Positions 2,291 to 58,634 are shown, numbered from the stretch's first letter. The stretch: 64,000 bases of DNA from Monocercomonoides exilis PA203 (GCA_001643675.2 LSRY02000034.1:558001-622000), one strand, 5' to 3'. Notes: generated from the letters alone by a model not told the origin. Program-made: numbers and translations.

Positions 2291-5200
2291 AGTATGGTGG
2301 AAAACCCGAACAGTTGCAAAAACCCGCACATATCATCTTGAATAATTTAAAAGATGATGAAAATTGATCAAATGATGTTTATTTTTGTTAAAACTCAATG
2401 TCGATTTCAAAAATTCATTTTTATTATTGAAAATTAACTATTTTGGTACAATTTTCAGTTGAAGATAATTTTTGATTCTTCTCATTTTTATTTTGATGTT
2501 ATCTTTCAATGATTTCATTCTTTTTTGTTTGCAACAAATATCACTCAACTTTTAAAGAATTTTTGTCTTTGACATCTTTTTGTAATGCGAAGTGAAAAAA
2601 TTATAAAAATTGAAATCTTTTCTCAAATAATAAAGTGACAAAGAATTAACTAAAAACATAAACACATCCTTACAGCAAAACATTGAAAATAACTTCTTGA
2701 ACGTGAAAAAATCGGAAAACATTAACATTTATCTGATTTTCTTATTAAAATGAAAAAAAAAAATGAAAAAAGTCAGTAGATGAAATAAATGAGATTCAAA
2801 AGAACACCATTATTGCATTATTTCTTCAAATGGAAACGAATTTGCAGATTTATCATAATAACGATCATCACATTGTTTTCTATCAAAATAATGGGTTCCA
2901 AACCCATAATAAAATTTTTTCAATCCAACAATGTTTCATAAATTTATTAACTTTGAAGAAATAGTTAAACAATTCAATAATTATTAAGTGGTTTGTCCAC
3001 TAGATATATTATTTGAAAGATTTTCATGGAGGATGTTCAATTCTACATTTTGTTCAATTTCAATCAAAATTTTCGATTTCAAATGATATGTAAACGCAAT
3101 GTGTTCCAATTTCCATGAAAGACTTTTTATGAATTCAGGAAATGCAGTTTCTAACTTTTTTTCGTCGGTAAGTGTTGTTAAAAACTGTTCAAAAGTTCTC
3201 ATTCTTTAAAGAATTACCTTTTTGTGGTTTGTTCTTTGTGTTTTATTTTTATTTTGATATCAATAAAACAATATTTTGTTCTTTTCATAGACAATTGCAC
3301 GACCATTGATAGAAAATTTATTCCCACAAGTTTTAAAATGAAAAAAGTTTATTTTTATTTTCGCAGGTTTGTTGATCACTTAATTTCTTTGTCTGGAACT
3401 TTGGTGCCTTTTCTATTATGCGATTCATTTTTAAATTTGAAAATGAAATAAATTGTTTTTTTCTTTTGTTTATCTTTTTTCAAAAATGTTTTTTTTTTCT
3501 TTTTTCTGAAAATTATTGTTTCTTTTCAGTAAAAATGCTTATGCTTGTTTTTTAATAAAAATAGAGTCATCCCGATTCTTTATCAAGAATTGTGAAAACT
3601 TGTTGTTGGAAAAAACGCCATTAACAAAATGCTTGACAATCAAATTGAATAGTAATTTCATAAATAATTAATATTTGATATGAATAGATTAAAAAGGTTT
3701 GATATGTTTTTCAACTTTTTTCGATTGTTTATTTCTCACAAATCATTTCTTTGGATTGTACTCACTTTCATCAGAATCCGTGAAAAGAACATAATGCTCA
3801 GATAATCTTTTGGGCAAACATTTTTCCGATCTCATGGAATATTTTTTGGACAATTTTTTTTCATCCGAATCTTCTTCTTCGTTGCTTGATGAAAGATCAT
3901 CTTCTATGTATTCACTGCTGTCAAGATCTCTTTTTCTCTTTTCTTTCGATTTATTTAATCTGTCGGAATGATGATCAGTCTCTGAAGATTCATCTTCAGA
4001 ATAATTAGAAGAACTCGATAAATCAGTCACTTGTTTTCGACCATCATGTTCATCCAAATGATCTGACCGGCACAGAATCAGTCTTTTCTGTTTGTTTTTT
4101 CTTCTGAAAACACGAACGACCAAAATATTTTCTTCCCCTTCTTGTGAATCAGTTGGATCTGATTCGAAATCTGTTGAACATGAGATATCGTCAGTGTCAT
4201 TATTGTCACCAGTATTCTCATTAGTAGTAAGGTTTGAAAGCTTGGAATCAGAAGAAGTAATTTTTGAAGATGAAGGTCTTTCCTTTTGATTTTTTATCGT
4301 TTTTTGCTTAATATTTGTTTTATGAATATTCTCAATTTTTTCATCAATATAAATAGACTTTTTCTCTTCAAATGCTTGCCATTCATTTAGAACTGCGTTT
4401 GATGTAATTAGTTTACCAGAGATGGACCATCGGTATGTCTGTCTCGCCGGTTTTACACCGAAAGACAAGGAATCCAAAGTGCACCTCAGAACGTGAGATA
4501 TTCGAGAAGACGTTATACCAGCTTCGTAAAACCCATGCCGTATTACTCTAGGTGCCATCGCATAATAAGAGCAATCTGCGATTGCTTGGACAAAAGGTAA
4601 AAATTCTGTTTTCATTTTTCTCACACTTGGTTCATTTCTAACATTTTTCAATTGCTTTTTTAGTGCTGCATTAGGTCCGAGATCAAGTGGCTGAAGGATA
4701 TGGGATGTGTGTGCTGGTAGCACAACGACATCCACGTTTTCTTCAGAAAACTTTTTCCACAGCTGGATATTTTGTCTTGAAGAGTGTCCGTCAAGAATTA
4801 TTAAAGCAGAGAGTGATGAATTGCTTATTTTTTCTTCGGATATTTTTTCGTATTGAGTAATTTCTTTTTTCGTGAAGCTTGCTTTTTGCATCTGAGTGTC
4901 ATTCTTTATCCACCAATCTCTATTATCATCTTCTTCAATTAGAAACATTCTTTCATCAGAAGAACTTAAATAAGTTTCATCACGAAAGTTAGTAATTTCA
5001 TCAACATCAACTTTAGGAGATCCATTTGATGGTATTTGAAAACTCTTTTTGTTTCGAAAAAAATTTTCACACTCTGAAGATTCTTTTGAACAGCCAAATG
5101 CGGATTGGTGCAGTTGCTGCAACGCTTGAATTCGATCTCCTTCTGAAGACATTGTCTCTGAAAGTTCCAGTTTGTCAATACAAATGGATTCCTTGTGACT

Positions 5201-6511
5201 ATTTTCATTATCGCACTGATCTTTGGATCGCTGGGATTTTGTCGGTGAATCTGAGTTATCTATTGGAAATAGTTCTGATCCAGCTGATGAATGCAATGCT
5301 ATTGATTCTTGATCGTCTTCGTCTTGAAAATTTTGTTGTGTTGTTTTTTCACTAGAATCATTCTTTTTCATTTTCTGATCGCATTTTTCTAACCTTCTTT
5401 CTTTCGTTTTCAATTCACAAGATTTTTTTTGGAATATTTCATATTGATATTGTTGAATTCTTTCAACAACTTTTCTTTGCTTTTGAATGAAAGGAAGAAC
5501 ATGTTCTAACATTATTTTTTCAAATAGCTCTTTTGTCATCCATCCTTTTTGAGTTGAATGCAATACGAATGATTCGTCATTCCATTGTTCGTTTATTTCT
5601 TTTTCATATTTTGAACTTAAAAGAAGATGAGTGGGGAGATGATATCCATCAGCTCTCACAATAAATAAAAGAGTTAAATGACGAAGAGGAGGAGTTTCCA
5701 AACATGGCAAGTATTTGCATTTCTCATTTGCAATTCTTTTATTATGATGACGACAGTTGGACTGACAACTTGTTTCGTCCAATTGTTATATTAACGAAGG
5801 ATGATATTTTTTCTTCAGCATCAAAGTTCGCAAATGAGAAAGAAAAGACTGTATATTTGCTTTTAACGATGCTCTCAAGCGTGCATGATCAAGTCGAACT
5901 GGATTTATCATGCGCAATTGTTTTTGCCTTGATAAAAAATCGTAAACCCATCTCAGACTTGGTGTTTCGATATATTCAGTCGAGGCCGGAGATCTTTCGA
6001 TTCGAATTTGTCTTGCCTTGATTGGAAAATAAGTTTCAAATTTCAAAATAAAAAAATCATACTAAAAAAGGAATGTCATTAATTGATGGCTGCTTCAAAA
6101 TATTGTGCCAATTTAATATAATTTGAACAAGCTTCTCTTCTTCTTCCTTCGTTAAATATCGTGGCCTTCCATTAATACCAGATATCTCACCGCGAGATTC
6201 CATTCGATTTGCTCTGTTTCTTCGAAAATATTCTTTTCTGGAATTATTCATATTTTCTGTCTTCACTTTTTGCATTTGAATAATTTGAATATCAACAATT
6301 GACTGATTTCTGCAATATTTTTGGCTTTTTTAAAAATTTAATATGGAATAACTCCCATCATAATAAATGCATTTTTATTCTTATTAAAAATTCATTTATA
6401 TTTTGAAGTGTTTATTTAAAAAAAACTTTTTCTTAACACCAAAATTTTATTATGTTTCCAAAAATCCTAAGAGTGCGGGTTTTTGCAAATGTTCGGGTTT
6501 TTGCACATATC
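2291..6511 (-). mobile_element. pogo/Tigger-like DNA transposon (family P1), ~4.2 kb
   Basis: Imperfect ~40-bp TIRs with core aaaacccgaaca.ttgcaaaaacccgcac at 2291-2329 and 6473-6511; encloses a DDE_1-type transposase. Exact ends uncertain by 1-2 nt. Confidence 0.85.
3743..6275 (-). pseudogene. pogo-like DDE_1 (CENP-B family) transposase with one intron and a premature stop
   Basis: GRPRYLT HTH region, intron 6062-6017 (phase 0), in-frame TAA at 5786-88 just before QLDETS, then GWMT, LIILDGHSSR, LPAHTSHILQPLDL and a long acidic tail. Confidence 0.85.
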
Positions 6512-12190: not shown

Positions 12191-16655
<4,465 letters not shown>

Positions 16656-43846: not shown

Positions 43847-44757
43847 TCATTCGATAAAGAGCGAATTCAATTGTTTTGCATGAACAGAATAGGTGATTTG
43901 GTGGAGATAGGTGTTTATCCCATTATTTGATTCGATTTTGTTCTGGGCGATGAGGGGGAGCCAGCCATTGTACACGTCATTATCAGCTGTGTTGTTGTTC
44001 CATACTCTTTTTGTTGGGGTTGTTGATCCACAGTTCTCGAATGGGGATTGTGTGATGATGCTTCCGTAAAAGAACACATCATTCCCTCTGCCACTTGTTG
44101 CTGTGTTACCGTTGAAGAAGCATAAAGGATGAATTTTACTCCATTCATCCAAGAGTTAGTTCCATCAAAGTATATTCCTGCTCCGCCATAAGTGGATGAT
44201 GAAGTTAATTTGTTGTTTATGAACTGACAATCATCAATTGAAAATTGTTTAGGCTTCGTTCCTGGAGGGAAAAGAAATGTGAGAGGACCAGTTGAATCGT
44301 TTCCAGAATTTGAAACACATTTGTTGTTTGAAAAAAGGAATTGACAGATACAGTCAAGTCGTTTGACAAGAAATACCAATCAGTTCCACACCAATTTGCG
44401 ATTGAGCAATTTTCCACTCTGTTTTCAGAAAATGTCCAAGCAGAAATTGATTGCGGCCAAGCTATGCAAGTTGCTCCTCCATGGGCAGCTGAACAACTCG
44501 TGAAATTGGATTTTGCGATGTCGATTTTCAGCAAGAAATCGCAACGCAACGCACCACCATGATTTGTATTTGAACAATAATTAAAAGAGCAAGAAGTGAT
44601 TGTGAGATTTTCATTTGTGCAGTTAACATTAAGAGCTCCGCCATAACTTAAGGCACTATTTGAATCATTCCATTCGCACCACTCAAAGCGATGGCTGTTC
44701 ACATCAAATGAAGTCAATCATCCAGGTGATTTTCTGTGAGTTTCATTTCCTGCATAG
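43847..44757 (-). pseudogene. Frameshifted fragment of a beta-helix (GGA-repeat) surface protein, cut by the palindrome
   Basis: YGGAL, HGGAL, YGGAG, GRGNDVFF motifs over three overlapping frames; ends at the element terminus. Confidence 0.75.
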
Positions 44758-45259
44758 GGCTATAATTTTATCTTGACCTTTTTTCTATATAAAGACCCTT
44801 TTGTTTTACCCTGCCAACAGCTATGCACAAGCTAGTTTAAAATATAAAATAACCAGAACTGTTTGTAACATAATAATCTAATTATTCTGAACTATTTTTT
44901 TTGATAATTTCATATTTGACAAAAAGATCAAGGAAAATTAAAATTTTATGTATTGATCATTGGCTTGCTGCTTTTCCAGTGAATACTTATTATCAGAAGT
45001 TTTAAACTTTTATATCATAATACAACATTTATTTTTTATGGTTTTGTTGTTTAAAACATTCTCAACTTGTTTTAATAATATTTTTTTCTCTTTTCATACA
45101 TTTTTTCAAAAAACACGATTTTAAGGACACATATGAATTTGTTTTGAAATATATTGAAATGAGAAATAAACATTATTAAAATAAAACGATTCTTGAGTGT
45201 TAAAACGATGATTTATTTATGAGTGTTTGGTCATTTGAAACACAAAAAAATGATATGTA

Positions 45260-45709
45260 CAGTCAAAACCGGATATAATCACATCGAATACAATCACATT
45301 CATTTATAGTCACATTTTTCGATGCACCTACATTTTTTGTTTGTTTTTCATTCATTTTCCATCGCATACAATCACAGGGCTGTAAATATATAATCACATT
45401 TTTTATTATTATGCGTTAATATTTCAATGAAAAATCGGTTTTTTGATCAAAATTTTCAAAAAATCGATTTTTCAAAATAATGTTAAAATAAGTCTGAATA
45501 ACATAATAAAACAATAAAAATTGTTATTTCTATTGAAAAATGTGTATTTGTCAAGTTTTTTCAAAAATAAAAAAATTGACCCAAAATTAATTATTTCTAA
45601 AATAAAATGTCATTTTTTTCTGTGTAAAGCATCATCGTGTATAATCACAATCGGATATAGTCACAAAAAGTCCTGCAAAAACCGATGTGATTATATCCGG
45701 TTTTGACTG
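45260..45709. mobile_element. TA-flanked MITE family A, intact
   Basis: TIR cagtcaaaaccggatataatcacatcg; TA at 45258-59 and 45710-11. Confidence 0.93.
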
Positions 45710-45871
45710 TATAATCATGGACAAAACCCGGGAAAAGGACAAAACCCGGAAGCATACCCTGCAGTTTTCGATTTCTTCAGATTTGATTTATTTCTAAGTT
45801 TGATTGAATTAGTTGTTGGCATATTCACAGAGAACGGGGCAGCTTTGATCTGACCCAGTATTTTTTTATTT

Positions 45872-46030
45872 TTAGGGTTAAAATTTCAAAATAATCACTG
45901 TATTAATTGCTTGGTTTAGGTTTTAGGGTTAGCGTAACAGTTCTTGGGCTTAGGGTTTTGTTCCCGCTCTTTTTTTTAGGGTTAGCACACAAAAAAATTT
46001 GATCTTTTTGGATTTTTTGGGTTAGGGTTA
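45872..46030 (+). repeat. Dispersed degenerate telomeric repeats (TTAGGG, telo-box-like)
   Basis: At least five ttagggtt units plus variants, all on one strand. Confidence 0.8.
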
Positions 46031-46066
46031 AGCCAGGTTTAAGTTGAGTCATAAGAAAGTAAAGCT

Positions 46067-46157
46067 GGGCTTTGGCTCGAGTAGCGCAAGCGGTAGCTAC
46101 CTCGACCATTGATATTCCGTTGGTCAAAGGTCGGGGGTTCGACTCCTGCCAAAGCTC
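46067..46157 (+). ncRNA. tRNA-related or vault-RNA-like Pol III transcript, 91 nt
   Basis: A box TAGCGCAAGCGG, B box GGTTCGACTCC, 10-bp terminal stem gggctttggc/gccaaagctc, central hairpin gacca/tggtc, T7 terminator. Confidence 0.65.
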
Positions 46158-46946
46158 TTTTTTTCTGTGTTTTTTATGATTTTTTTCATTGAAATTTTTT
46201 TGCCCCGTTCTCTGTGAATACACCTAGTTGTTCACGTACATCTGGAAAAAAACAAAAAATAGAAAAACAATGTCTATTTAAGTTGTTTTTTGATTGAATT
46301 CTTTTCTATTTTAATAACCTTGGTGAGAAAAAAAAACATTAACCGAAGCATTTGGCTTTCGTTATTTATGGAACAAAAACGAAAATTTATAAATCGGGCA
46401 TTCAAAGTTTTTGTTCCTCGAAAATAGTTACGTTATTTAGTTAAAGTCAAACTGTCTTCCCCAAGCTGATTCTGAAACCTTCTTTCTTTTTCGTTTTTCA
46501 GTCGCAAACAATACATTCTCCTCCATTTCTTCTTCTAAGTTTTGCCCAGAAATTGTTTTATCACAACTTTTGTTCTGTTGCTCATCATGTTGACTCACTG
46601 ATGCCAGCTTGGATTGGACGACGCTGCATTTGTTCAGTTCACATTTTCCTGTAAAAAAAACAATTTTCTTAAAAATAAACCCAAAAATATGATTTGGGTG
46701 ATTATTTTTGAAATCATATTTGTTTGAACAAAAATTTCTGTTTATCAACATAGTTTTAAATCTTTGTTAATGAACTCTGAAAAGTGACTGATCTTTTTTG
46801 TGACACCTCTTCAATTTTTTCAAGTTAAACTTGTGCCTTTAAAACAATAGATAAACATTTTTTGCTTGAAAGAAAATTATTGAACAAATAACAATGTATA
46901 TTCTAAATATTCAACTCCCCGAAAAAAGTTATGATTACAAAAATAA

Positions 46947-48370
46947 TCACCCATTTAAATTATATAAGCCTTCCTCATGTGTGTCGTTCTCCTCAACAAA
47001 TTCATCACTTGTGATAACCTTTTTGTTCATGATTTCGGAAAAAGTGCATGAAGAAGTTAGCGAAGAAGTTTTTGCGATTGACAACTGATTGGGCAATCGA
47101 TCCAAAACAACAGAAGGATCGAAGGGCTCAATTCCGCATGCGTAGGATGATTTTCTAATAGTTCTGGGATCCAGTGCAGCACTCACTGCATCTGCCAAAG
47201 CTGGAATAAGAGCTTTTCTGGAGGCAGATACTCCACTTTCGGTGGGAGGTTTGAAAGAAGAATACAAACTTTTTTTGAACCGGGCAAACACGTATCTATC
47301 AAGGGGTTGTGTTAAATGAGTGGAATGAGATGGAAGAATTGCAATTTCAATTGAATGTGTGCAGCACCAGGACATTACTGGCCAACAAAGCCTTGACGAA
47401 TGTCCATCCATAATAATTAGCGCTGTTGCTTCTTTTCCATGAAGTTCTATTCTTTTCTTGTCTATTGCAGGTAATATGTGTTGCATCATAATTTCTTCGT
47501 AGTCAGTTTTTGTAATCCATCCACTTCCATTGGTAATAATTTCAACATTTCGAAACTTCAAAGGAAGAAGATCTTTTGGAACTGTTTTGGAAGGCCACAA
47601 CATCAAAGGATTCAAAGAAGATCCGTCCGTATAAACTCCAAAAATTAATGTCGCGTTGGGCTCATGCTGTTGTGAATGTAATACTGACTGCTTTTGATCT
47701 GAATCTGTGATGATGTGGTTATTATCTGATTTGCATAAACTGATTCCAGTTTCGTCAATATTTAAAATCAGATCCTGACTGATTTTTTTTGTTTTTAATG
47801 TTTCCTCCAATAATGAAAACCATGAAGAAATGTTAGCAGGAGAGGATGCTAGAAGCCGTTTTACATCCATATATTTTGGCTTTTCCATTTTCAAAGCGTT
47901 GCTTTTTCTTATAAATCTTCGAGCCCATTTTTCATTAATTTCTTTCATTTCACATTCGTCATCTTCATTTCGTTTTCTTCTCTTCAAAACATTCTCAGCC
48001 TAAAAATATAAATTGAAAAGAGTTGAAAAACATATCCTTAAATAAACCATACAATTCTGATGACATCTTTTATTGTTATTTTGTTAGTCGAAATTAATAG
48101 TGTTTTCGCACAATCTTCAATTTCTTCTTGTTCTTCTTTGTTGAACATGTTCGGTCTACCATTGTGTTGAGGATCTCTTCCCTGCTTTAAAGAAGAGATA
48201 TGTCGATATAGAGCCGAAGAAGAAACTAACCCTGAAGAAACAATGCTTTTGTGTGAAATTTCTTCTTTTGATAGAAGAAAGTTGATTTTTTCAACTTTTG
48301 AATCCAGTCTTCGATACTCGGCTGTTGCAAAAATTTTGGAAAGAGCTGTTGAAGAAGGAAAAGAAGACAT
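46947..48370 (-). CDS. pogo-like DDE_1 transposase, 2 exons (intron 48052-48000), uninterrupted
   Basis: GRPNMF, NIDETG, GWIT, IIMDGHSSR, LPSHSTHLTQPLDR; phase-0 intron joins the two ORFs. Confidence 0.92.
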
Positions 48371-50101
48371 ATTGAAGGAAAATGGATACGTTATGGTTTA
48401 TCGATCCATACATAAAAGAGAAATATATAATTCAAGTTCAGTTTTTTATTCATATTATTATTGTATTATTGTTAAACAATAAAAATAAGCATGTGATTAC
48501 TAATATCAAATTTGATAATTTGCTTTTTCTTTTTTTCGTTTTTTGTTAGAAATTTCCGGGTTTTGTCCATGATTATGCATAATTTTCAGTTCAAATTCTT
48601 GAAAAGTTCCTTTTCATTTCATTGCTTAATGCAAATAAACGATAAATAAGATTTTGTATATTTTTTTCATTTTAATAAAATTTGACACAAACACTTGTTT
48701 ATATAAATAATCGTGTTTTAAGCAAAAACAGTGAAATGAGAAAAAAAGGTCAAAAATAAAATTGAAAATGTTAAAAACAAGTTAAAATAATAATATAGGA
48801 ATGTGGAATGCTGATGCTGTGGCTTAAAACGTTCAGTATTAAATATTCGCTTCACAGCCAGCAAGTCTTTGATCTGGGTACTAAAATAAAAAAAATAACA
48901 ATTTTTATGAACAAATTTTTTTTTTAAAAATTAAATAACAGAAAGTTGTAAATAATTATAATAAATTTGTTTATTAATTTATTTTTTGTTTCAAACCTTT
49001 GCTAAGCTCGAAAAAAGCTTCAGAAAGTTTCAAAAAAAAGGGTTGAGATAAATTTTTTAGGTCAAGATAAAATTTGCACCCCATGGACAAATTGTAAGAT
49101 TGTGTGAAAGATGTGGAAGAAATAATTTAATTGACGAAAACATAAGCAACAGAAAATAAACATTTTTTGTCACATGTGAGTTTATTTTTTTTTTCGTTTC
49201 TTTTCTTCTTTATATTTTCCCTCTTGCCTCCATCCTTTTTGTGGAGTTATTCCTTCCTCTTCCAACTCACATAAAACATGTTGATGGTGCCATCCTCCCC
49301 AGCCTCAACAGCCCATCAACTTCTCTCTCTGCCTTCAATACCTCTTTTCTCCTCCAAACACTTTCTTCATCAGATGATCCTGTTGTGCGGTGAGCATATT
49401 TTATCTTGACCTAAAAAATTTATCTCAACCCTTTTTTTTGAAACTTTCTGAAGCTTTTTTCGAGCTTAGCAAAGGTTTGAAACAAAAAATAAATTAATAA
49501 ACAAATTTATTATAATTATTTACAACTTTCTGTTATTTAATTTTTAAAAAAAAAATTTGTTCATAAAAATTGTTATTTTTTTTATTTTAGTACCCAGATC
49601 AAAGACTTGCTGGCTGTGAAGCGAATATTTAATACTGAACGTTTTAAGCCACAGCATCAGCATTCCACATTCCTATATTATTATTTTAACTTGTTTTTAA
49701 CATTTTCAATTTTATTTTTGACCTTTTTTTCTCATTTCACTGTTTTTGCTTAAAACACGATTATTTATATAAACAAGTGTTTGTGTCAAATTTTATTAAA
49801 ATGAAAAAAATATACAAAATCTTATTTATCGTTTATTTGCATTAAGCAATGAAATGAAAAGGAACTTTTCAAGAATTTGAACTGAAAATTATGCATAATC
49901 ATGGACAAAACCCGGAAATTTCTAACAAAAAACGAAAAAAAGAAAAAAGCAAATTATCAAATTTGATATTAGTAATCACATGCTTATTTTTATTGTTTAA
50001 CAATAATACAATAATAATATGAATAAAAAACTGAACTTGAATTATATATTTCTCTTTTATGTATGGATCGATAAACCATAACGTATCCATTTTCCTTCAA
50101 T

Positions 50102-51525
50102 ATGTCTTCTTTTCCTTCTTCAACAGCTCTTTCCAAAATTTTTGCAACAGCCGAGTATCGAAGACTGGATTCAAAAGTTGAAAAAATCAACTTTCTTCTA
50201 TCAAAAGAAGAAATTTCACACAAAAGCATTGTTTCTTCAGGGTTAGTTTCTTCTTCGGCTCTATATCGACATATCTCTTCTTTAAAGCAGGGAAGAGATC
50301 CTCAACACAATGGTAGACCGAACATGTTCAACAAAGAAGAACAAGAAGAAATTGAAGATTGTGCGAAAACACTATTAATTTCGACTAACAAAATAACAAT
50401 AAAAGATGTCATCAGAATTGTATGGTTTATTTAAGGATATGTTTTTCAACTCTTTTCAATTTATATTTTTAGGCTGAGAATGTTTTGAAGAGAAGAAAAC
50501 GAAATGAAGATGACGAATGTGAAATGAAAGAAATTAATGAAAAATGGGCTCGAAGATTTATAAGAAAAAGCAACGCTTTGAAAATGGAAAAGCCAAAATA
50601 TATGGATGTAAAACGGCTTCTAGCATCCTCTCCTGCTAACATTTCTTCATGGTTTTCATTATTGGAGGAAACATTAAAAACAAAAAAAATCAGTCAGGAT
50701 CTGATTTTAAATATTGACGAAACTGGAATCAGTTTATGCAAATCAGATAATAACCACATCATCACAGATTCAGATCAAAAGCAGTCAGTATTACATTCAC
50801 AACAGCATGAGCCCAACGCGACATTAATTTTTGGAGTTTATACGGACGGATCTTCTTTGAATCCTTTGATGTTGTGGCCTTCCAAAACAGTTCCAAAAGA
50901 TCTTCTTCCTTTGAAGTTTCGAAATGTTGAAATTATTACCAATGGAAGTGGATGGATTACAAAAACTGACTACGAAGAAATTATGATGCAATACATATTA
51001 CCTGCAATAGACAAGAAAAGAATAGAACTTCATGGAAAAGAAGCAACAGCGCTAATTATTATGGATGGACATTCGTCAAGGCTTTGTTGGCCAGTAATGT
51101 CCTGGTGCTGCACACATTCAATTGAAATTGCAATTCTTCCATCTCATTCCACTCATTTAACACAACCCCTTGATAGATACGTGTTTGCCCGGTTCAAAAA
51201 AAGTTTGTATTCTTCTTTCAAACCTCCCACCGAAAGTGGAGTATCTGCCTCCAGAAAAGCTCTTATTCCAGCTTTGGCAGATGCAGTGAGTGCTGCACTG
51301 GATCCCAGAACTATTAGAAAATCATCCTACGCATGCGGAATTGAGCCCTTCGATCCTTCTGTTGTTTTGGATCGATTGCCCAATCAGTTGTCAATCGCAA
51401 AAACTTCTTCGCTAACTTCTTCATGCACTTTTTCCGAAATCATGAACAAAAAGGTTATCACAAGTGATGAATTTGTTGAGGAGAACGACACACATGAGGA
51501 AGGCTTATATAATTTAAATGGGTGA
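50102..51525 (+). CDS. pogo-like DDE_1 transposase, 2 exons (50102-50419, 50473-51525)
   Basis: Same motifs as the mirror copy; intron gtatgg...ttttag 50420-50472. Confidence 0.92.
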
Positions 51526-52246
51526 TTATTTTTGTAATCATAACTTTTTTCGGGGAGTTGAATATTTAGAATATACATTGTTATTTGTTCAATAATTTTC
51601 TTTCAAGCAAAAAATGTTTATCTATTGTTTTAAAGGCACAAGTTTAACTTGAAAAAATTGAAGAGGTGTCACAAAAAGATCAGTCACTTTTCAGAGTTCA
51701 TTAACAAAGATTTAAAACTATGTTGATAAACAGAAATTTTTGTTCAAACAAATATGATTTCAAAAATAATCACCCAAATCATATTTTTGGGTTTATTTTT
51801 AAGAAAATTGTTTTTTTTACAGGAAAATGTGAACTGAACAAATGCAGCGTCGTCCAATCCAAGCTGGCATCAGTGAGTCAACATGATGAGCAACAGAACA
51901 AAAGTTGTGATAAAACAATTTCTGGGCAAAACTTAGAAGAAGAAATGGAGGAGAATGTATTGTTTGCGACTGAAAAACGAAAAAGAAAGAAGGTTTCAGA
52001 ATCAGCTTGGGGAAGACAGTTTGACTTTAACTAAATAACGTAACTATTTTCGAGGAACAAAAACTTTGAATGCCCGATTTATAAATTTTCGTTTTTGTTC
52101 CATAAATAACGAAAGCCAAATGCTTCGGTTAATGTTTTTTTTTCTCACCAAGGTTATTAAAATAGAAAAGAATTCAATCAAAAAACAACTTAAATAGACA
52201 TTGTTTTTCTATTTTTTGTTTTTTTCCAGATGTACGTGAACAACTA

Positions 52247-52653
52247 GGTGTATTCACAGAGAACGGGGCAAAAAAATTTCAATGAAAAAAATCATAAAAA
52301 ACACAGAAAAAAAGAGCTTTGGCAGGAGTCGAACCCCCGACCTTTGACCAACGGAATATCAATGGTCGAGGTAGCTACCGCTTGCGCTACTCGAGCCAAA
52401 GCCCAGCTTTACTTTCTTATGACTCAACTTAAACCTGGCTTAACCCTAACCCAAAAAATCCAAAAAGATCAAATTTTTTTGTGTGCTAACCCTAAAAAAA
52501 AGAGCGGGAACAAAACCCTAAGCCCAAGAACTGTTACGCTAACCCTAAAACCTAAACCAAGCAATTAATACAGTGATTATTTTGAAATTTTAACCCTAAA
52601 AATAAAAAAATACTGGGTCAGATCAAAGCTGCCCCGTTCTCTGTGAATATGCC
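52247..52653 (-). mobile_element. Merlin-type RNA-carrying MITE, mirror copy
   Basis: Reverse complement of 45818-46224, TSD aacaacta. Confidence 0.88.
52314..52404 (-). ncRNA. tRNA-related or vault-RNA-like Pol III transcript, mirror copy
   Basis: Reverse complement of 46067-46157. Confidence 0.65.
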
Positions 52654-52761
52654 AACAACTAATTCAATCAAACTTAGAAATAAATCAAATCTGAAGAAAT
52701 CGAAAACTGCAGGGTATGCTTCCGGGTTTTGTCCTTTTCCCGGGTTTTGTCCATGATTATA

Positions 52762-53211
52762 CAGTCAAAACCGGATATAATCACATCGGTTTTTGCAGGA
52801 CTTTTTGTGACTATATCCGATTGTGATTATACACGATGATGCTTTACACAGAAAAAAATGACATTTTATTTTAGAAATAATTAATTTTGGGTCAATTTTT
52901 TTATTTTTGAAAAAACTTGACAAATACACATTTTTCAATAGAAATAACAATTTTTATTGTTTTATTATGTTATTCAGACTTATTTTAACATTATTTTGAA
53001 AAATCGATTTTTTGAAAATTTTGATCAAAAAACCGATTTTTCATTGAAATATTAACGCATAATAATAAAAAATGTGATTATATATTTACAGCCCTGTGAT
53101 TGTATGCGATGGAAAATGAATGAAAAACAAACAAAAAATGTAGGTGCATCGAAAAATGTGACTATAAATGAATGTGATTGTATTCGATGTGATTATATCC
53201 GGTTTTGACTG
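52762..53211. mobile_element. TA-flanked MITE family A, mirror copy
   Basis: Reverse complement of 45260-45709. Confidence 0.93.
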
Positions 53212-53755
53212 TACATATCATTTTTTTGTGTTTCAAATGACCAAACACTCATAAATAAATCATCGTTTTAACACTCAAGAATCGTTTTATTTTAATAATG
53301 TTTATTTCTCATTTCAATATATTTCAAAACAAATTCATATGTGTCCTTAAAATCGTGTTTTTTGAAAAAATGTATGAAAAGAGAAAAAAATATTATTAAA
53401 ACAAGTTGAGAATGTTTTAAACAACAAAACCATAAAAAATAAATGTTGTATTATGATATAAAAGTTTAAAACTTCTGATAATAAGTATTCACTGGAAAAG
53501 CAGCAAGCCAATGATCAATACATAAAATTTTAATTTTCCTTGATCTTTTTGTCAAATATGAAATTATCAAAAAAAATAGTTCAGAATAATTAGATTATTA
53601 TGTTACAAACAGTTCTGGTTATTTTATATTTTAAACTAGCTTGTGCATAGCTGTTGGCAGGGTAAAACAAAAGGGTCTTTATATAGAAAAAAGGTCAAGA
53701 TAAAATTATAGCCGTATTCTAATTTGAATCCCGTGTGGATGATTAAGAAAAAATA

Positions 53756-54424: not shown

Positions 54425-54742
54425 TACTTAATGAAAAGTGAAACGAACCTTCAACTCATAAATTCAGTTTATCATTCGACTCTCATTAGCTTTATTATTA
54501 TACTGTGTTTAAATGTGTTTCCATTTTTTAACAAAAAAATCAAAACCCTTGAAATTAAAAAATTGAGAATCCATAAAAAAATACCCACAAAATATGATTG
54601 ATAGGTAATTCTGAAAAAATAAATAAAAATTTTCAATGCCGTTCTGGACAGATTTCAACGTTGATTCGAATAAGAAAACTTCATCAAAAATAATCCAAAA
54701 TCAATTGAAATAAATCCACATTATTTGAATAAAATGGAGTTA

Positions 54743-55807
54743 CCGTCGTTCAGAAACCCGGGAATTTTTCAAAAACCCGGACTTTTTATAAAATTTCATA
54801 TATCTCGACAAGTTTCAAAAATTAAATTATAATAATTCACACATTCATACATCAGTATATAACGCATCTAACCATATTGAAATTTTTATTTATTGTGCTG
54901 TATTTATGAAGAAATAAATAATTTTTATTTTTGATAATATGACTTTTAATAATTTATTCTGTTTCAACAAAACGATTCAGTTCATCTTTTATACATAAAA
55001 CTTATTTTTTCTTTGTTGCAAACTGTTCTGGTTATTTTTCATTTTCGGCAATTTGCTCTTTCTAATGGAAAAAAAAAACTATCATTTTTGAAAAACATTA
55101 GCAATGGGATAATTTAAAAATTATTTTTTGCACAACACGAAAATATCCAAGTGAATTTAACACATACAAAAATAAATATGATAGTTGTATAAAATTTCTT
55201 TATTGATGAAATTTTAAATGATTCATTAGGTATTTCATAAAACGCGATTTGGTAGAAAAATCATAGAAAATGATCATTTTAAATCATTAACTAGAAAAAT
55301 AATCTTGATTTATAAAATACCTACTGAATCGTTTAAAATTTCATCAATAAAGAAATTTTATACAACTATCATATTTATTTTTGTATGTGTTAAATTCACT
55401 TGGATATTTTCGTGTTGTGCAAAAAATAATTTTTAAATTATCCCATTGCTAATGTTTTTCAAAAATGATAGTTTTTTTTTTCCATTAGAAAGAGCAAATT
55501 GCCGAAAATGAAAAATAACCAGAACAGTTTGCAACAAAGAAAAAATAAGTTTTATGTATAAAAGATGAACTGAATCGTTTTGTTGAAACAGAATAAATTA
55601 TTAAAAGTCATATTATCAAAAATAAAAATTATTTATTTCTTCATAAATACAGCACAATAAATAAAAATTTCAATATGGTTAGATGCGTTATATACTGATG
55701 TATGAATGTGTGAATTATTATAATTTAATTTTTGAAACTTGTCGAGATATATGAAATTTTATAAAAAGTCCGGGTTTTTGAAAAATTCCCGGGTTTCTGA
55801 ACGACGG
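54743..55807. mobile_element. Foldback MITE with ~500-bp near-perfect arms and ~70-bp loop
   Basis: ccgtcgttcagaaacccgg...ccgggtttctgaacgacgg; TA on both sides. Confidence 0.93.
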
Positions 55808-58634
55808 TAATTCATTATTAATCTCTAAATTTTTAGGAAAAATTATCCGTCTTTCTTTTCCTATTTCATGATCGTTTTTGTAGCTTGAATTATTTTGAAA
55901 CTGTATTTATTTTTTTCGAATAATCATGCTCCAAGCCATGAACAAATTTTGCAAAAACGAATCGTGCAAAACAATAAATTCTGAAATGGATGTGTGTGAA
56001 TGAAGCAAAACCATGTGTATGAATAATTGAAGTAAATAAATTAACTTTTAAAAACAAATGAATCACAAATAAATAATAAAAAGAATGCAAAATTGCTTTC
56101 TGAAAAAAAAGTCCTCAAAAACAGGTAAATGAAAAATTCTCCCCTCAACAGGTTGATCATAGCAATAAATTATCAATTATTTAAATGACAATTTCTCAAT
56201 CATTAAAACCACAAAAACGAAAAAGAGTCTTCTGAACAAAGGTTATAAAGCAAGAATTGTTCAAACCGCTTGACAATTACAACAATTTAAATAATAATAG
56301 TATTGAATTCAAATTTAAAGCCCAAGTATGGATTGGAACTTTAGTATCTCTTTCAATTCAATAAGCCAATTATCTTTCAGTAACATCACAAAAATTGTTA
56401 AAGAAAATTTCTTGCAAGATTTCTCAACTACTTTTGAGTAAATGTTTATGAACATTCATTTGATGATGTGAAACCATACCAATTGTGATACAGCAATTCA
56501 TAATATTTTAACTTAACCGATAATGCATGTTTTTGTTGCGTAGAAAATACTTTGCCGCAAGAAGCATTGAAAAAAAAGCATATATGAACCCATTAAGCAG
56601 TCATTGAGATAAATTATTGAATCTTAATGCAACTTCAGAAGTATCAAAAATCGAAAGATCAGAAAAGAGATAAAAAAAGAGAGAAATCAGCATCAAAAAA
56701 TAGAATATGTGCACACCGAAGCATCAAAGACCATTACATACAAGATGGCAGGTTTGCTTTCCTTGTAGAATAAATCTTTGTGCAACGTAAATCGAATCAT
56801 GAAAATTAAAAACTGACGCAATTCCATGGAAAAGAGGGGACAGAACAAAGGTACAGCTATGAAATGAGTGTGATAAGGTACCAAAGAACGCATAATAAAA
56901 ATAAAAATTAAAATTAAAAATAAACCCTAAATTATATCCAAAATAAAGAAATGAAACATATTTTTTTTGAGGTTTCAAAAAAAAATAAATGTTTCAGAAA
57001 AGACGAAGAAAAGAAGAAAAGAAGAAAATTTTTGATCACGAGTTAAAGTTGGTAAGCAACAAGGCTGATACAATGGGAACAAAGATTCTTATAACTCTTC
57101 ACAGAAAGAACAAGAACAATAAGAGAGAGAAAGAAAAAGAAATAATATAATTATAAAAAGAAAGAATGAACAATAAATCCAGTGTTTTCGGTTGAAAAAC
57201 ATCTTTCATTATAATCATGAAATCTTCAAAATTAAAAAAAAAAAAAACTAGAAAAAATCGAAACAATTTAAATAAGCACCAAATAGCAAACATGAAGACA
57301 GCACATGAAATTCAAAATAAAGCCATTAACTTGCTTTCAATCTCTGATACAAGGTCACGCAACATTAACAGTACTTTCATTGTCTTTAACACAGAAAAAA
57401 AAACAAATAATTTATTGGTAGTATAACCAATAAAAATGCACATGAAACATTAAAAAATTGAAAAAAACCAACAAAATTAAAAACGAAATGATCATAATTC
57501 CATCACTTAAATAAGGAATCGTAGAATAAAAACAAAAAAGAAAAATGGGATACCGAAAATAGTGCAAAATTAAGAAAAAACGATTTGATTAAAAATACAC
57601 TTGAAAATAAAAAAAACATTATATAAAATTAAATAAAATAAACAAAAAGAAAAAGAGCGAGTTAAGAATGAAACATATAAAATTGTTAAAAAAAAAAAAA
57701 AAAAAAGAAAGAAAGAAAGTTAACAATATTTAAGACAAGGAAGGTGAGTGAAATAAAAAAATCGAGAAGATGATTTCGGAATAGGGAATACTCAAGAAAA
57801 TTGCCAGGTTTGGTTGAATTATCTCGAGATTCAGATTGAAAAGAAACGAATTAATCAAAAAATAATATTCATAAATTAGCAAATAAAAATACAAAAAAAT
57901 ACAAAAAATTTGCAACTCATCATAAACTGGATGAAATTTATAAGAACTGAAAGATAAATTGCATTGGGAAAGAGATTCAAGCAATTTTCTTTTTCTTTTT
58001 CTTTTTCTTTTTTTTTCGCATTGGAGCAAATTTCTTGTATCGTCATTGACGACTACTTCGTCAATTTTCATTGTTGGCTCTGATTCCTAATCCAATTGAG
58101 CAGAATGAGGTTTCATTTCAAATCTCAATAGAATTATCAAACTCAAATCGTTGTAATAATCAAGCGGTTTAATCTTTCTTTTCTTTCTTTCTTTATACCT
58201 TTGTTTTTTTTGACTTTAATAGCTCAAAATAGGCACCAATGAAGGTTCTCTAATATGTCACAGAAACGTGGCAAAGTGTTGAACGTCTGACAAGCATGCA
58301 ATAAGAAGCTTGCATTGCCTATATTAAATAATCTGACAATATTAGAATAAAAGAAATATATATATATATAAATCATTGAAATAAATAATGAAATAATATA
58401 AAATTTATATAAAATTAACAGAAAATAATAAATTGATTGAGTTATATGAAATAATTGAATTAATAAAATTATGCAAAATAAATAAATAAATATCATATGA
58501 AATTCAAAAATGAAATTTCAAAAAATAAAGTCATCATCACAATATCAAAATTCATAACATAAAATTAGCAACCAACCAAAAATTAATGTGAAAATATAAA
58601 AAAGAAAAGAAAAAGAAAAAGAAAAGACAAACTT

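Follow-up and report, generated by a model that had tools for sequence, protein, structure and literature searches.

A putative non-autonomous Merlin element with a tRNA-derived unit and telomere-like motifs, nested in a pogo-type transposon of Monocercomonoides exilis

The question raised by this locus of Monocercomonoides exilis PA203 is whether a short non-coding segment inside a pogo-type transposon is a mobile element in its own right and, if so, whether its interior, made up of telomere-like motifs and a unit resembling a Pol III gene, is a cargo with a function or filler that is carried along passively. The segment is 407 bp long (45818-46224) and lies in the window, that is, the whole 64-kb stretch of DNA that we analyzed and to which all positions refer unless another locus is named. 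The window comes from contig LSRY02000034.1 of assembly GCA_001643675.2. The segment is bounded by TIRs with GG...CC ends and by a TSD, arranged as follows:

45810-45817, no strand: left TSD, TAGTTGTT, 8 bp
45818-45841, plus strand: left TIR, GGCATATTCACAGAGAACGGGGCA, 24 nt, GG start
46201-46224, minus strand: right TIR, whose reverse complement is GGTGTATTCACAGAGAACGGGGCA
46225-46232, no strand: right TSD, TAGTTGTT, 8 bp, an exact repeat of the left TSD

The TIRs match at 22 of 24 positions (2 mismatches) and contain a perfect 20-nt core (45822-45841 and 46201-46220). Both open with GG (GGCATATT... on the left and GGTGTATT... on the right), and they differ from each other at positions 3-4 (GGCA vs GGTG). 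The TIR 20-mer has four matches, with 0.02 expected by chance, and all of them fall within the two copies of the element, the second of which is described below. The longest ORF of the segment, 106 aa, has neither a Pfam match nor a protein homologue. In its size and structure (<800 bp, non-coding, TIRs plus a TSD), the segment has the generic properties of a MITE, and the length, the 20-bp perfect TIR core, the GG...CC ends and the 8-bp TSD given for it in the original prediction were all confirmed on the sequence.

Nesting in another transposon provides the means of asking whether the segment is a true insertion. The features of the host element are:

45710-48578, minus strand: host pogo-type element with 21-nt TIRs and a DDE_1 transposase ORF
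45711-45731 and 48557-48577, inverted pair: pogo TIR, ATAATCATGGACAAAACCCGG, 21 nt
46947-47987, minus strand: pogo DDE_1 transposase ORF, antisense relative to the 407-bp element

The 407-bp element begins 108 bp inward from the pogo 3' end. Its nesting in the 3' region of pogo and its antisense orientation had been described correctly, but the host had been called intact, which was not borne out: the annotated pogo product on LSRY02000034.1, which is 100% identical to the ORF, has 313 aa with DDE_1 as its only domain, and a second pogo ORF of 110 aa lies upstream in a different frame. A short intron linking the 110-aa and 346-aa pogo ORFs was considered and rejected, as no GT...AG solution that keeps the frame was found. 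The nearest paralogues of the transposase ORF are MONOS_ proteins.

BLAST comparison with the fetched loci revealed two paralogous pogo copies, L001 (LSRY02000057.1, 91-92% identical) and L002 (LSRY02000022.1, 74%). The L001 copy lacks exactly the 407-bp element and one copy of the TSD. Its junction reads GAAT-TTGTGGGT-CATGTTCATCTGG, with the single 8-nt stretch TTGTGGGT at the TSD position, while that of the window reads GAAT-TAGTTGTT-(407 bp)-TAGTTGTT-CACGTACATCTGG. When positions 45818-46232 were excised in silico, the junction aligned to the L001 pogo without gaps at 92% identity. The 407-bp segment is a true insertion, and its entry into this pogo copy postdates the split from the paralogue that is 91-92% identical. 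Given the empty site in that paralogue, we regard the segment as a cut-and-paste TIR element. The original prediction had proposed a DNA transposon and, among its checks, the search for an empty site; the site was found in the paralogous pogo copy, with a single stretch at the TSD position and a gap-free alignment after excision, and the cut-and-paste nature of the element is thereby borne out.

The pogo 3' end has a further peculiarity of its own. At 45719-45749 the motif GGACAAAACCCGG occurs twice in direct orientation at a distance of 18 nt, first within the TIR and then subterminally; it is also present in the pogo copies of L001 and L002, and the paired copies are probably transposase-binding sites.

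Another important question is whether the second copy of the element in the window represents an independent insertion. The relevant features are:

44754-53717, no strand: inverted duplication with arms 44754-49082 and 49389-53717 and a 306-bp unique spacer
52247-52653, minus strand: second element copy, 100% identical, with TSDs at 52239-52246 and 52654-52661

The arms of this 4.3-kb inverted duplication are 99-100% identical, each harboring pogo and the MITE, and the second copy has the same TSD and flanks as the first. Being part of an inverted segmental duplication, flanks included, the second copy does not count as an independent insertion. Thus, the window records one insertion event, which was afterwards duplicated along with its surroundings. 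The inverted duplication itself may be an ONT fold-back assembly artefact. A 16-nt inverted repeat, (A)ATTTTATCTTGACCT, delimits each arm, with ends that contain GG in front of it (GGCTATA, GGTGCAA and GGTGAGCATA); by eye, no TSDs of the 4.3-kb arms were found, also when a flank-exchange (inversion) scenario was included. The arm-terminus motif TTTTATCTTGACCT..TTTATCTCAACCC occurs three times in published M. exilis contigs and may belong to an uncharacterised repeat family.

To which superfamily does the element belong? In Monocercomonoides sp. PA203, Merlin elements are represented by more than 100 copies in at least seven families, all of which have TIRs of 23-29 bp with a GG start and TSDs of 8 bp (PMC8101967, Lopes and colleagues). 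The 5' end of the family F4 alignment reads TSD + GGCATATTGTAAATATAGCGGAA..., and the end of family F3, in reverse complement, reads GGCATAAAGGAAC... (PMC8101967). The 407-bp element, from the same host, is organized alike: its TIRs start with GG and are 24 nt long, within the published range of 23-29 bp, and its 8-bp TSD is single at the paralogous empty site. The terminal GGCATATT (first 8 nt) is identical in the left end of the element and in F4, and the first 6 nt (GGCATA) are shared with F3; the termini compared were GGCATATTGTAAATATAGCGG for F4, GGCATAAAGG for F3 and GGCATATTCACAG for the element. Past position 8, the TIR is unlike that of any published family F1-F7. Words from the TIR core gave zero matches in the F1-F7 alignments and the ~394-kb M. 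exilis contig file by a text search in which words broken across two lines could go unnoticed, and no autonomous Merlin with the exact TIR of the element was found in these two sources. The 64-kb window contains no Merlin transposase.

Because the TIR-core words are absent from the published F1-F7 data, the Merlin call rests on the end structure, the TSD length and the 8-nt terminal match; on these features, the Merlin superfamily appears to be the best assignment and is well supported. The Merlin-typical ends and TSD noted in the original prediction thus have their counterparts in Merlin families of the same genome (PMC8101967). Compared with F1-F7, the element differs in its 407-bp length without a transposase gene and in the divergence of its TIR past position 8, and it differs from Merlin MITEs in that its interior is not a deleted transposase but a tRNA-derived unit together with telomere-like motifs.

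Membership of another superfamily with 8-bp TSDs (hAT, P, Zisupton or Novosib) would be the alternative, given that TSDs of this length also occur outside Merlin and that no matching transposase was found for the TIRs of the element. The ends of hAT and P elements are typically YARNG or CANRG, however, whereas those observed here begin with GG, and TIR length, TSD and the identity of GGCATATT with F4 all fit Merlin families of the same genome. We therefore regard such an attribution as improbable and retain Merlin as the putative superfamily.

The right-hand part of the interior is occupied by a unit with the following features:

46067-46157, plus strand: 91-nt unit, rearranged and tRNA-Arg(ACG)-like, with a 10-bp closing stem, GGGCTTTGGC/GCCAAAGCTC
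46082-46093, plus strand: A-box-like motif, TAGCGCAAGCGG, read from the sequence and aligning to the tRNA-Arg D arm
46136-46146, plus strand: B box / T-loop, GGTTCGACTCC, perfect, identical to the T-loop segment in the tmRNA model
46158-46164, plus strand: T7 run immediately downstream of the closing stem, resembling a Pol III terminator

The A-box consensus is TRGCNNAGTGG, from which TAGCGCAAGCGG departs by one inserted base and one mismatch. The A box, B box, terminal stem and T7 that had been reported for the 91-nt unit are thus present, although the first of these can be called only A-box-like. The most stable fold of the unit is a rod of about -42 to -43.2 kcal/mol (z = -3.9), and a cloverleaf-constrained fold, in which the acceptor and T arms were forced, is 13.5 kcal/mol worse than this optimum.

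Is the unit derived from a tRNA, or does it share with tRNAs only the universal T-loop? A genuine M. exilis tRNA-Arg(ACG) gene, located at L010:1772-1845 (minus strand) and followed by TTTT, was the only tRNA encountered in 172 kb of M. exilis sequence and provides the closest comparator. The 91-nt unit aligns to it with a score of 42, whereas shuffled sequences score 17.2 +/- 4.5 and 0/2000 of them reach 42 (z about 5.5). The matches include the 3' strand of the T stem (5/5), the 3' strand of the acceptor (6/7) and the 5' GGGCT (5/5), and a hand count gives about 23/29 matches at T-stem, variable-loop and acceptor positions, which vary between tRNAs. The last 30 nt at the 3' end match closely (AGGTCGGGGGTTCGACTCCTGCCAAAGCTC in the unit vs AGGTTGCAGGTTCAAGTCCTGCC-TAGCTC in the tRNA), AGTAGCGCAAGCGGTAGC of the unit aligns to the tRNA-Arg D arm AGTGGCTCAATTGGATAGAGC, and T7 is situated where the tRNA-Arg gene has TTTT. 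The closing stem is preserved, with paired differences relative to tRNA-Arg, while the anticodon loop has expanded beyond recognition and an insertion of about 8 nt lies close to the 5' end. Because this significant alignment to a genuine M. exilis tRNA-Arg extends beyond the universal T-loop, the unit is considered tRNA-derived and Arg-like, in agreement with the tRNA-derived promoter suggested originally.

None of the dedicated searches recognized the unit as a present-day tRNA. With default settings, ARAGORN found no tRNA either with or without introns, and relaxed thresholds led to mutually inconsistent models. Rfam returned nothing for the whole window at gathering thresholds, and for 45700-46350 at E values up to 10 it returned no tRNA-family match, its sole results being mir-737, by chance, and the T-loop of 11 nt; on these two Rfam searches, any known RNA family was rejected. 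A functional tRNA was rejected on the negative ARAGORN and Rfam results, the destroyed anticodon arm and the 13.5 kcal/mol by which the cloverleaf is disfavoured. M. exilis possesses selenocysteine machinery (PMC6759080), and tRNA-Sec was ruled out separately, since the plus strand has no U33-UCA anticodon loop, ARAGORN and Rfam were negative and the relaxed models contradict one another. As judged from its alignment, the 91-nt unit is a rearranged tRNA (Arg-like) pseudogene, and its recognition by Pol III/TFIIIC is plausible.

A tRNA-like unit inside a DNA transposon could also have arrived separately, as a tRNA-derived SINE retrotransposed into an older MITE. Units of this kind normally move by retrotransposition, as SINEs, which have no TIRs, whose TSDs vary and whose tail is A-rich or related to a LINE. 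Like the head of a tRNA-derived SINE, the 91-nt unit comes from a tRNA and has an A-like box, a B box and an anticodon region that has degenerated, and a relic at locus L002, presented below, consists of the telomere-like half without the tRNA-like unit. Unlike a SINE, however, the unit is enclosed by TIRs and an 8-bp TSD, ends in a T-run and is tailless; there is no direct repeat bracketing it, the downstream sequence is T-rich instead of an A-rich or LINE-like tail, and the unit did not recur in the 172 kb and about 394 kb of M. exilis sequence searched. The SINE hallmarks (own TSD, A-rich/LINE tail, no TIRs) are thus wanting, and we give a separate retrotransposition event very little credence.

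The left-hand part of the interior contains the telomere-like motifs:

45872-46029, plus strand: telomere-motif region with five TTAGGGTT at 45872, 45923, 45950, 45976 and 46022

The telomere repeat of M. exilis is TTAGGG (PMC6759080). All five TTAGGG units of the element are on the plus strand, each followed by TT, and not a single CCCTAA occurs inside the element. Ten of the 12 occurrences of TTAGGGTT in the 64-kb window fall inside the two element copies (1.07 expected), an enrichment of about 300-fold, and in 172 kb of M. exilis DNA, where the background of TTAGGG is 0.05-0.14 per kb, the only clusters are the element copies. The start spacings of 51, 27, 26 and 46 nt show the motifs to be dispersed, and a tandem (TTAGGG)n structure was not found: the units are isolated, with two in tandem at most (GGGTTAGGGTTA, 46019-46030). 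Thus, the claim of one-strand TTAGGG units upstream of the 91-nt unit stands as regards the motifs, their strand and their match to the host telomere, with the qualification that the motifs, isolated and 26-51 nt apart, form no telomere-like array. The possibility that the region consists of decayed tandem copies of the tRNA-like unit was also considered and discarded, as local alignments were non-significant (p about 0.3).

The motifs have a longer consensus in common, TTTTAGGGTTA(G/A), which invites a different interpretation, namely, that the TTAGGGTT repeats are subterminal transposase-binding sites serving transposition and that their likeness to telomeres is coincidental. Ac/Ds carries subterminal AAACGG repeats that bind its transposase, and in this interpretation TTAGGGTT would play the same part; the subterminal location of the motifs, 55-210 nt from the left end, their single orientation and the shared consensus TTTTAGGGTTA(G/A) are in its favor. 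The motifs are present at one end only, however, and the right end has no inverted counterparts; Merlin F3 and F4 contain no such motif in their subterminal regions; and five exact 8-mer matches to 1.3 telomere units would be an unlikely coincidence. Binding sites of this kind are accordingly an unlikely explanation of the motifs, though less so than the two rival origins discussed above.

How many copies of the element does the genome contain? Our sample of M. exilis DNA comprised 172 kb (the window and six pogo-rich loci of 108 kb) and ~394 kb of supplement contigs, i.e., about 0.57 Mb or <1% of the 82-Mb genome, so that its content is compatible with tens to a few hundred copies, although nothing in it points to them. 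Separate searches with the TIR and with the RNA unit, which had been proposed in order to see whether the two co-occur, yielded no further copy of either in the 172 kb and ~394 kb. In the 172 kb, this holds for TIRs with up to 4 mismatches in 20 and for the tRNA-like unit; in the F1-F7 alignments and the ~394-kb contigs, words from the TIR core, the B box and the telomere half had no match in the text search, with the same reservation for words split by a line break. Protein relatives of the 106-aa ORF, a possible route to more copies, numbered none. A metagenome scan with the TIR 20-mer produced only three JGI contigs (L004, L005 and L006), mutually homologous and of 45% GC, which were rejected as relatives of the element: each has one exact 20-mer, no second arm, an unrelated context and no similarity to the element elsewhere, pointing to a chance match. 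In this sample of <1% of the genome, one insertion and one segmental duplicate were present, so that a multi-copy family with differing TSDs, the strict definition of a MITE, was provisionally not found. With one independent copy in about 0.57 Mb, the terms 'family' and 'MITE', taken strictly as implying multiple copies, are unproven.

The sole relative is a 137-bp relic at L002:6369-6499 (LSRY02000022.1), 74% identical to element positions 22-158, which correspond to the telomere-motif half. It has no tRNA-like unit and no TIR pair or TSD, its motifs are mostly decayed, and it lies about 50 bp outside a pogo end in the opposite relative orientation. A full short relative of the element was ruled out at this site, since there is no TIR pair or TSD and nothing else matches beyond the 137 bp; the fragment is an old relic or else is related to the donor sequence. 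Of three copies examined in this pogo lineage (window, L001 and L002), two have MITE-related sequence in or next to their 3' end, which could reflect a target preference or a shared 'TE graveyard'.

These data bring us back to the origin of the element and the role of its interior. We consider it probable that the element is a young, low-copy, non-autonomous Merlin element that is moved in trans and passively carries captured host-derived filler. A Merlin (DDE_Tnp_IS1595-type) transposase encoded elsewhere would bind the 24-nt TIRs that start with GG and mobilise the element in trans; the 407 bp inserted precisely into the non-coding 3' end of pogo, generating the 8-bp TSD, and the surrounding 4.3 kb was later duplicated in inverted orientation, giving rise to the second copy. 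The interior would comprise two host-derived parts, the tRNA-Arg-like pseudogene and a stretch of ~160 bp with five TTAGGGTT, most likely acquired through transposon repair or capture, as in Pack-type elements, and carried along passively. No donor locus for the filler was identified, and passive capture is accordingly an inference. The pseudogene keeps the B box, the A-box-like motif, the stem and the T-run, by which Pol III/TFIIIC could recognise it. The one-strand enrichment of TTAGGGTT and the preserved closing stem with its paired differences are not explained by pure neutrality.

A functional reading of the same interior was put forward originally, in which a Merlin MITE family spreads two things at once, a Pol III-transcribed RNA of tRNA origin (or a TFIIIC site) and TTAGGG sites bound by a Myb protein that recognizes telomere repeats, and would work as a portable chromatin boundary, as an anti-silencing module or as a seed to which telomeres are added. 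In yeast, tDNAs (through TFIIIC) and Tbf1-bound TTAGGG sites are heterochromatin barriers, in keeping with such a role. The perfect B box, A-box-like motif and T7 placed as in the tRNA-Arg gene, the five same-strand units of the host telomere at about 300-fold over background and the stable fold (z = -3.9) would also suit this reading. The 91-nt unit has no RNA family match, however, the motifs are isolated and form no arrays, and the only relative, at L002, is without the tRNA part and has motifs that decayed at the background rate. The spreading of a Pol III RNA and telomere-protein sites found no positive support, there being one independent insertion in about 0.57 Mb, although a sample of <1% of the genome does not refute it by the conditions set out originally; nor is an insulator, anti-silencing or telomere-seed role supported by a single locus whose only relative lacks the tRNA part and has decayed motifs. 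The chances of a functional cassette thus seem slim beside those of passively carried filler. Slimmer still, by a little, are those of an uncatalogued M. exilis Merlin MITE family in which a conserved TFIIIC/Pol III unit and a TTAGGG payload would serve as a portable boundary or Pol III RNA gene, a role usually linked to SINEs and tDNAs.

Pack-MULE and Pack-TYPE elements are non-autonomous plant TIR elements with captured protein-coding fragments. Like them, the 407-bp element is TIR-bounded and non-autonomous, and its interior is probably captured host DNA; whereas theirs are coding fragments in plants, this interior, in a metamonad, consists of telomere-like DNA and a tRNA pseudogene without coding capacity. 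Short telomere units adjoining a TFIIIC-type B box may recall interstitial telomeric sequences, plant telo-boxes, yeast Tbf1 insulator sites and tDNA barriers, whereas the element has single-unit motifs at one locus.

The genome of M. exilis consists of nearly half repeats, the majority of them unclassified. To the Merlin families known in this amitochondriate protist, the 407-bp element would add a non-autonomous member, and its nested position (a MITE in pogo in a 4.3-kb duplicated block) offers a clean, datable case. It also shows that a DNA transposon is able to carry a tRNA-derived unit resembling a Pol III promoter. If many copies with conserved cargo existed, they would represent a rare cut-and-paste spread of a Pol III unit and telomere-protein sites, as opposed to retrotransposition, and a natural test bed for tDNA- or TTAGGG-based boundary function outside yeast.

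Several other features of the window deserve mention. A foldback-like element occupies 54727-55823; its arms, 523 nt long and 98% complementary, are separated by a spacer of 51 nt, and its ends carry AAACCCGG(G) motifs that resemble the TIR and the subterminal repeats of pogo, from which it may derive as a non-autonomous element with long TIRs. A second, distinct ORF of the pogo/Tigger type lies at 3743-5782 (minus strand) and encodes 679 aa that include a DDE_1 domain; it is 40-47% identical to MONOS_14170, MONOS_16454 and MONOS_2615 and has relatives also in Blattamonas nauphoetae and JGI metagenome contigs. Finally, a voltage-gated chloride channel (CLC) gene occupies 12191-16655 (plus strand), the GC-richest part of the window, with two ORFs, presumably separated by an intron, that match Pfam Voltage_CLC at positions 2-143 and 179-345.
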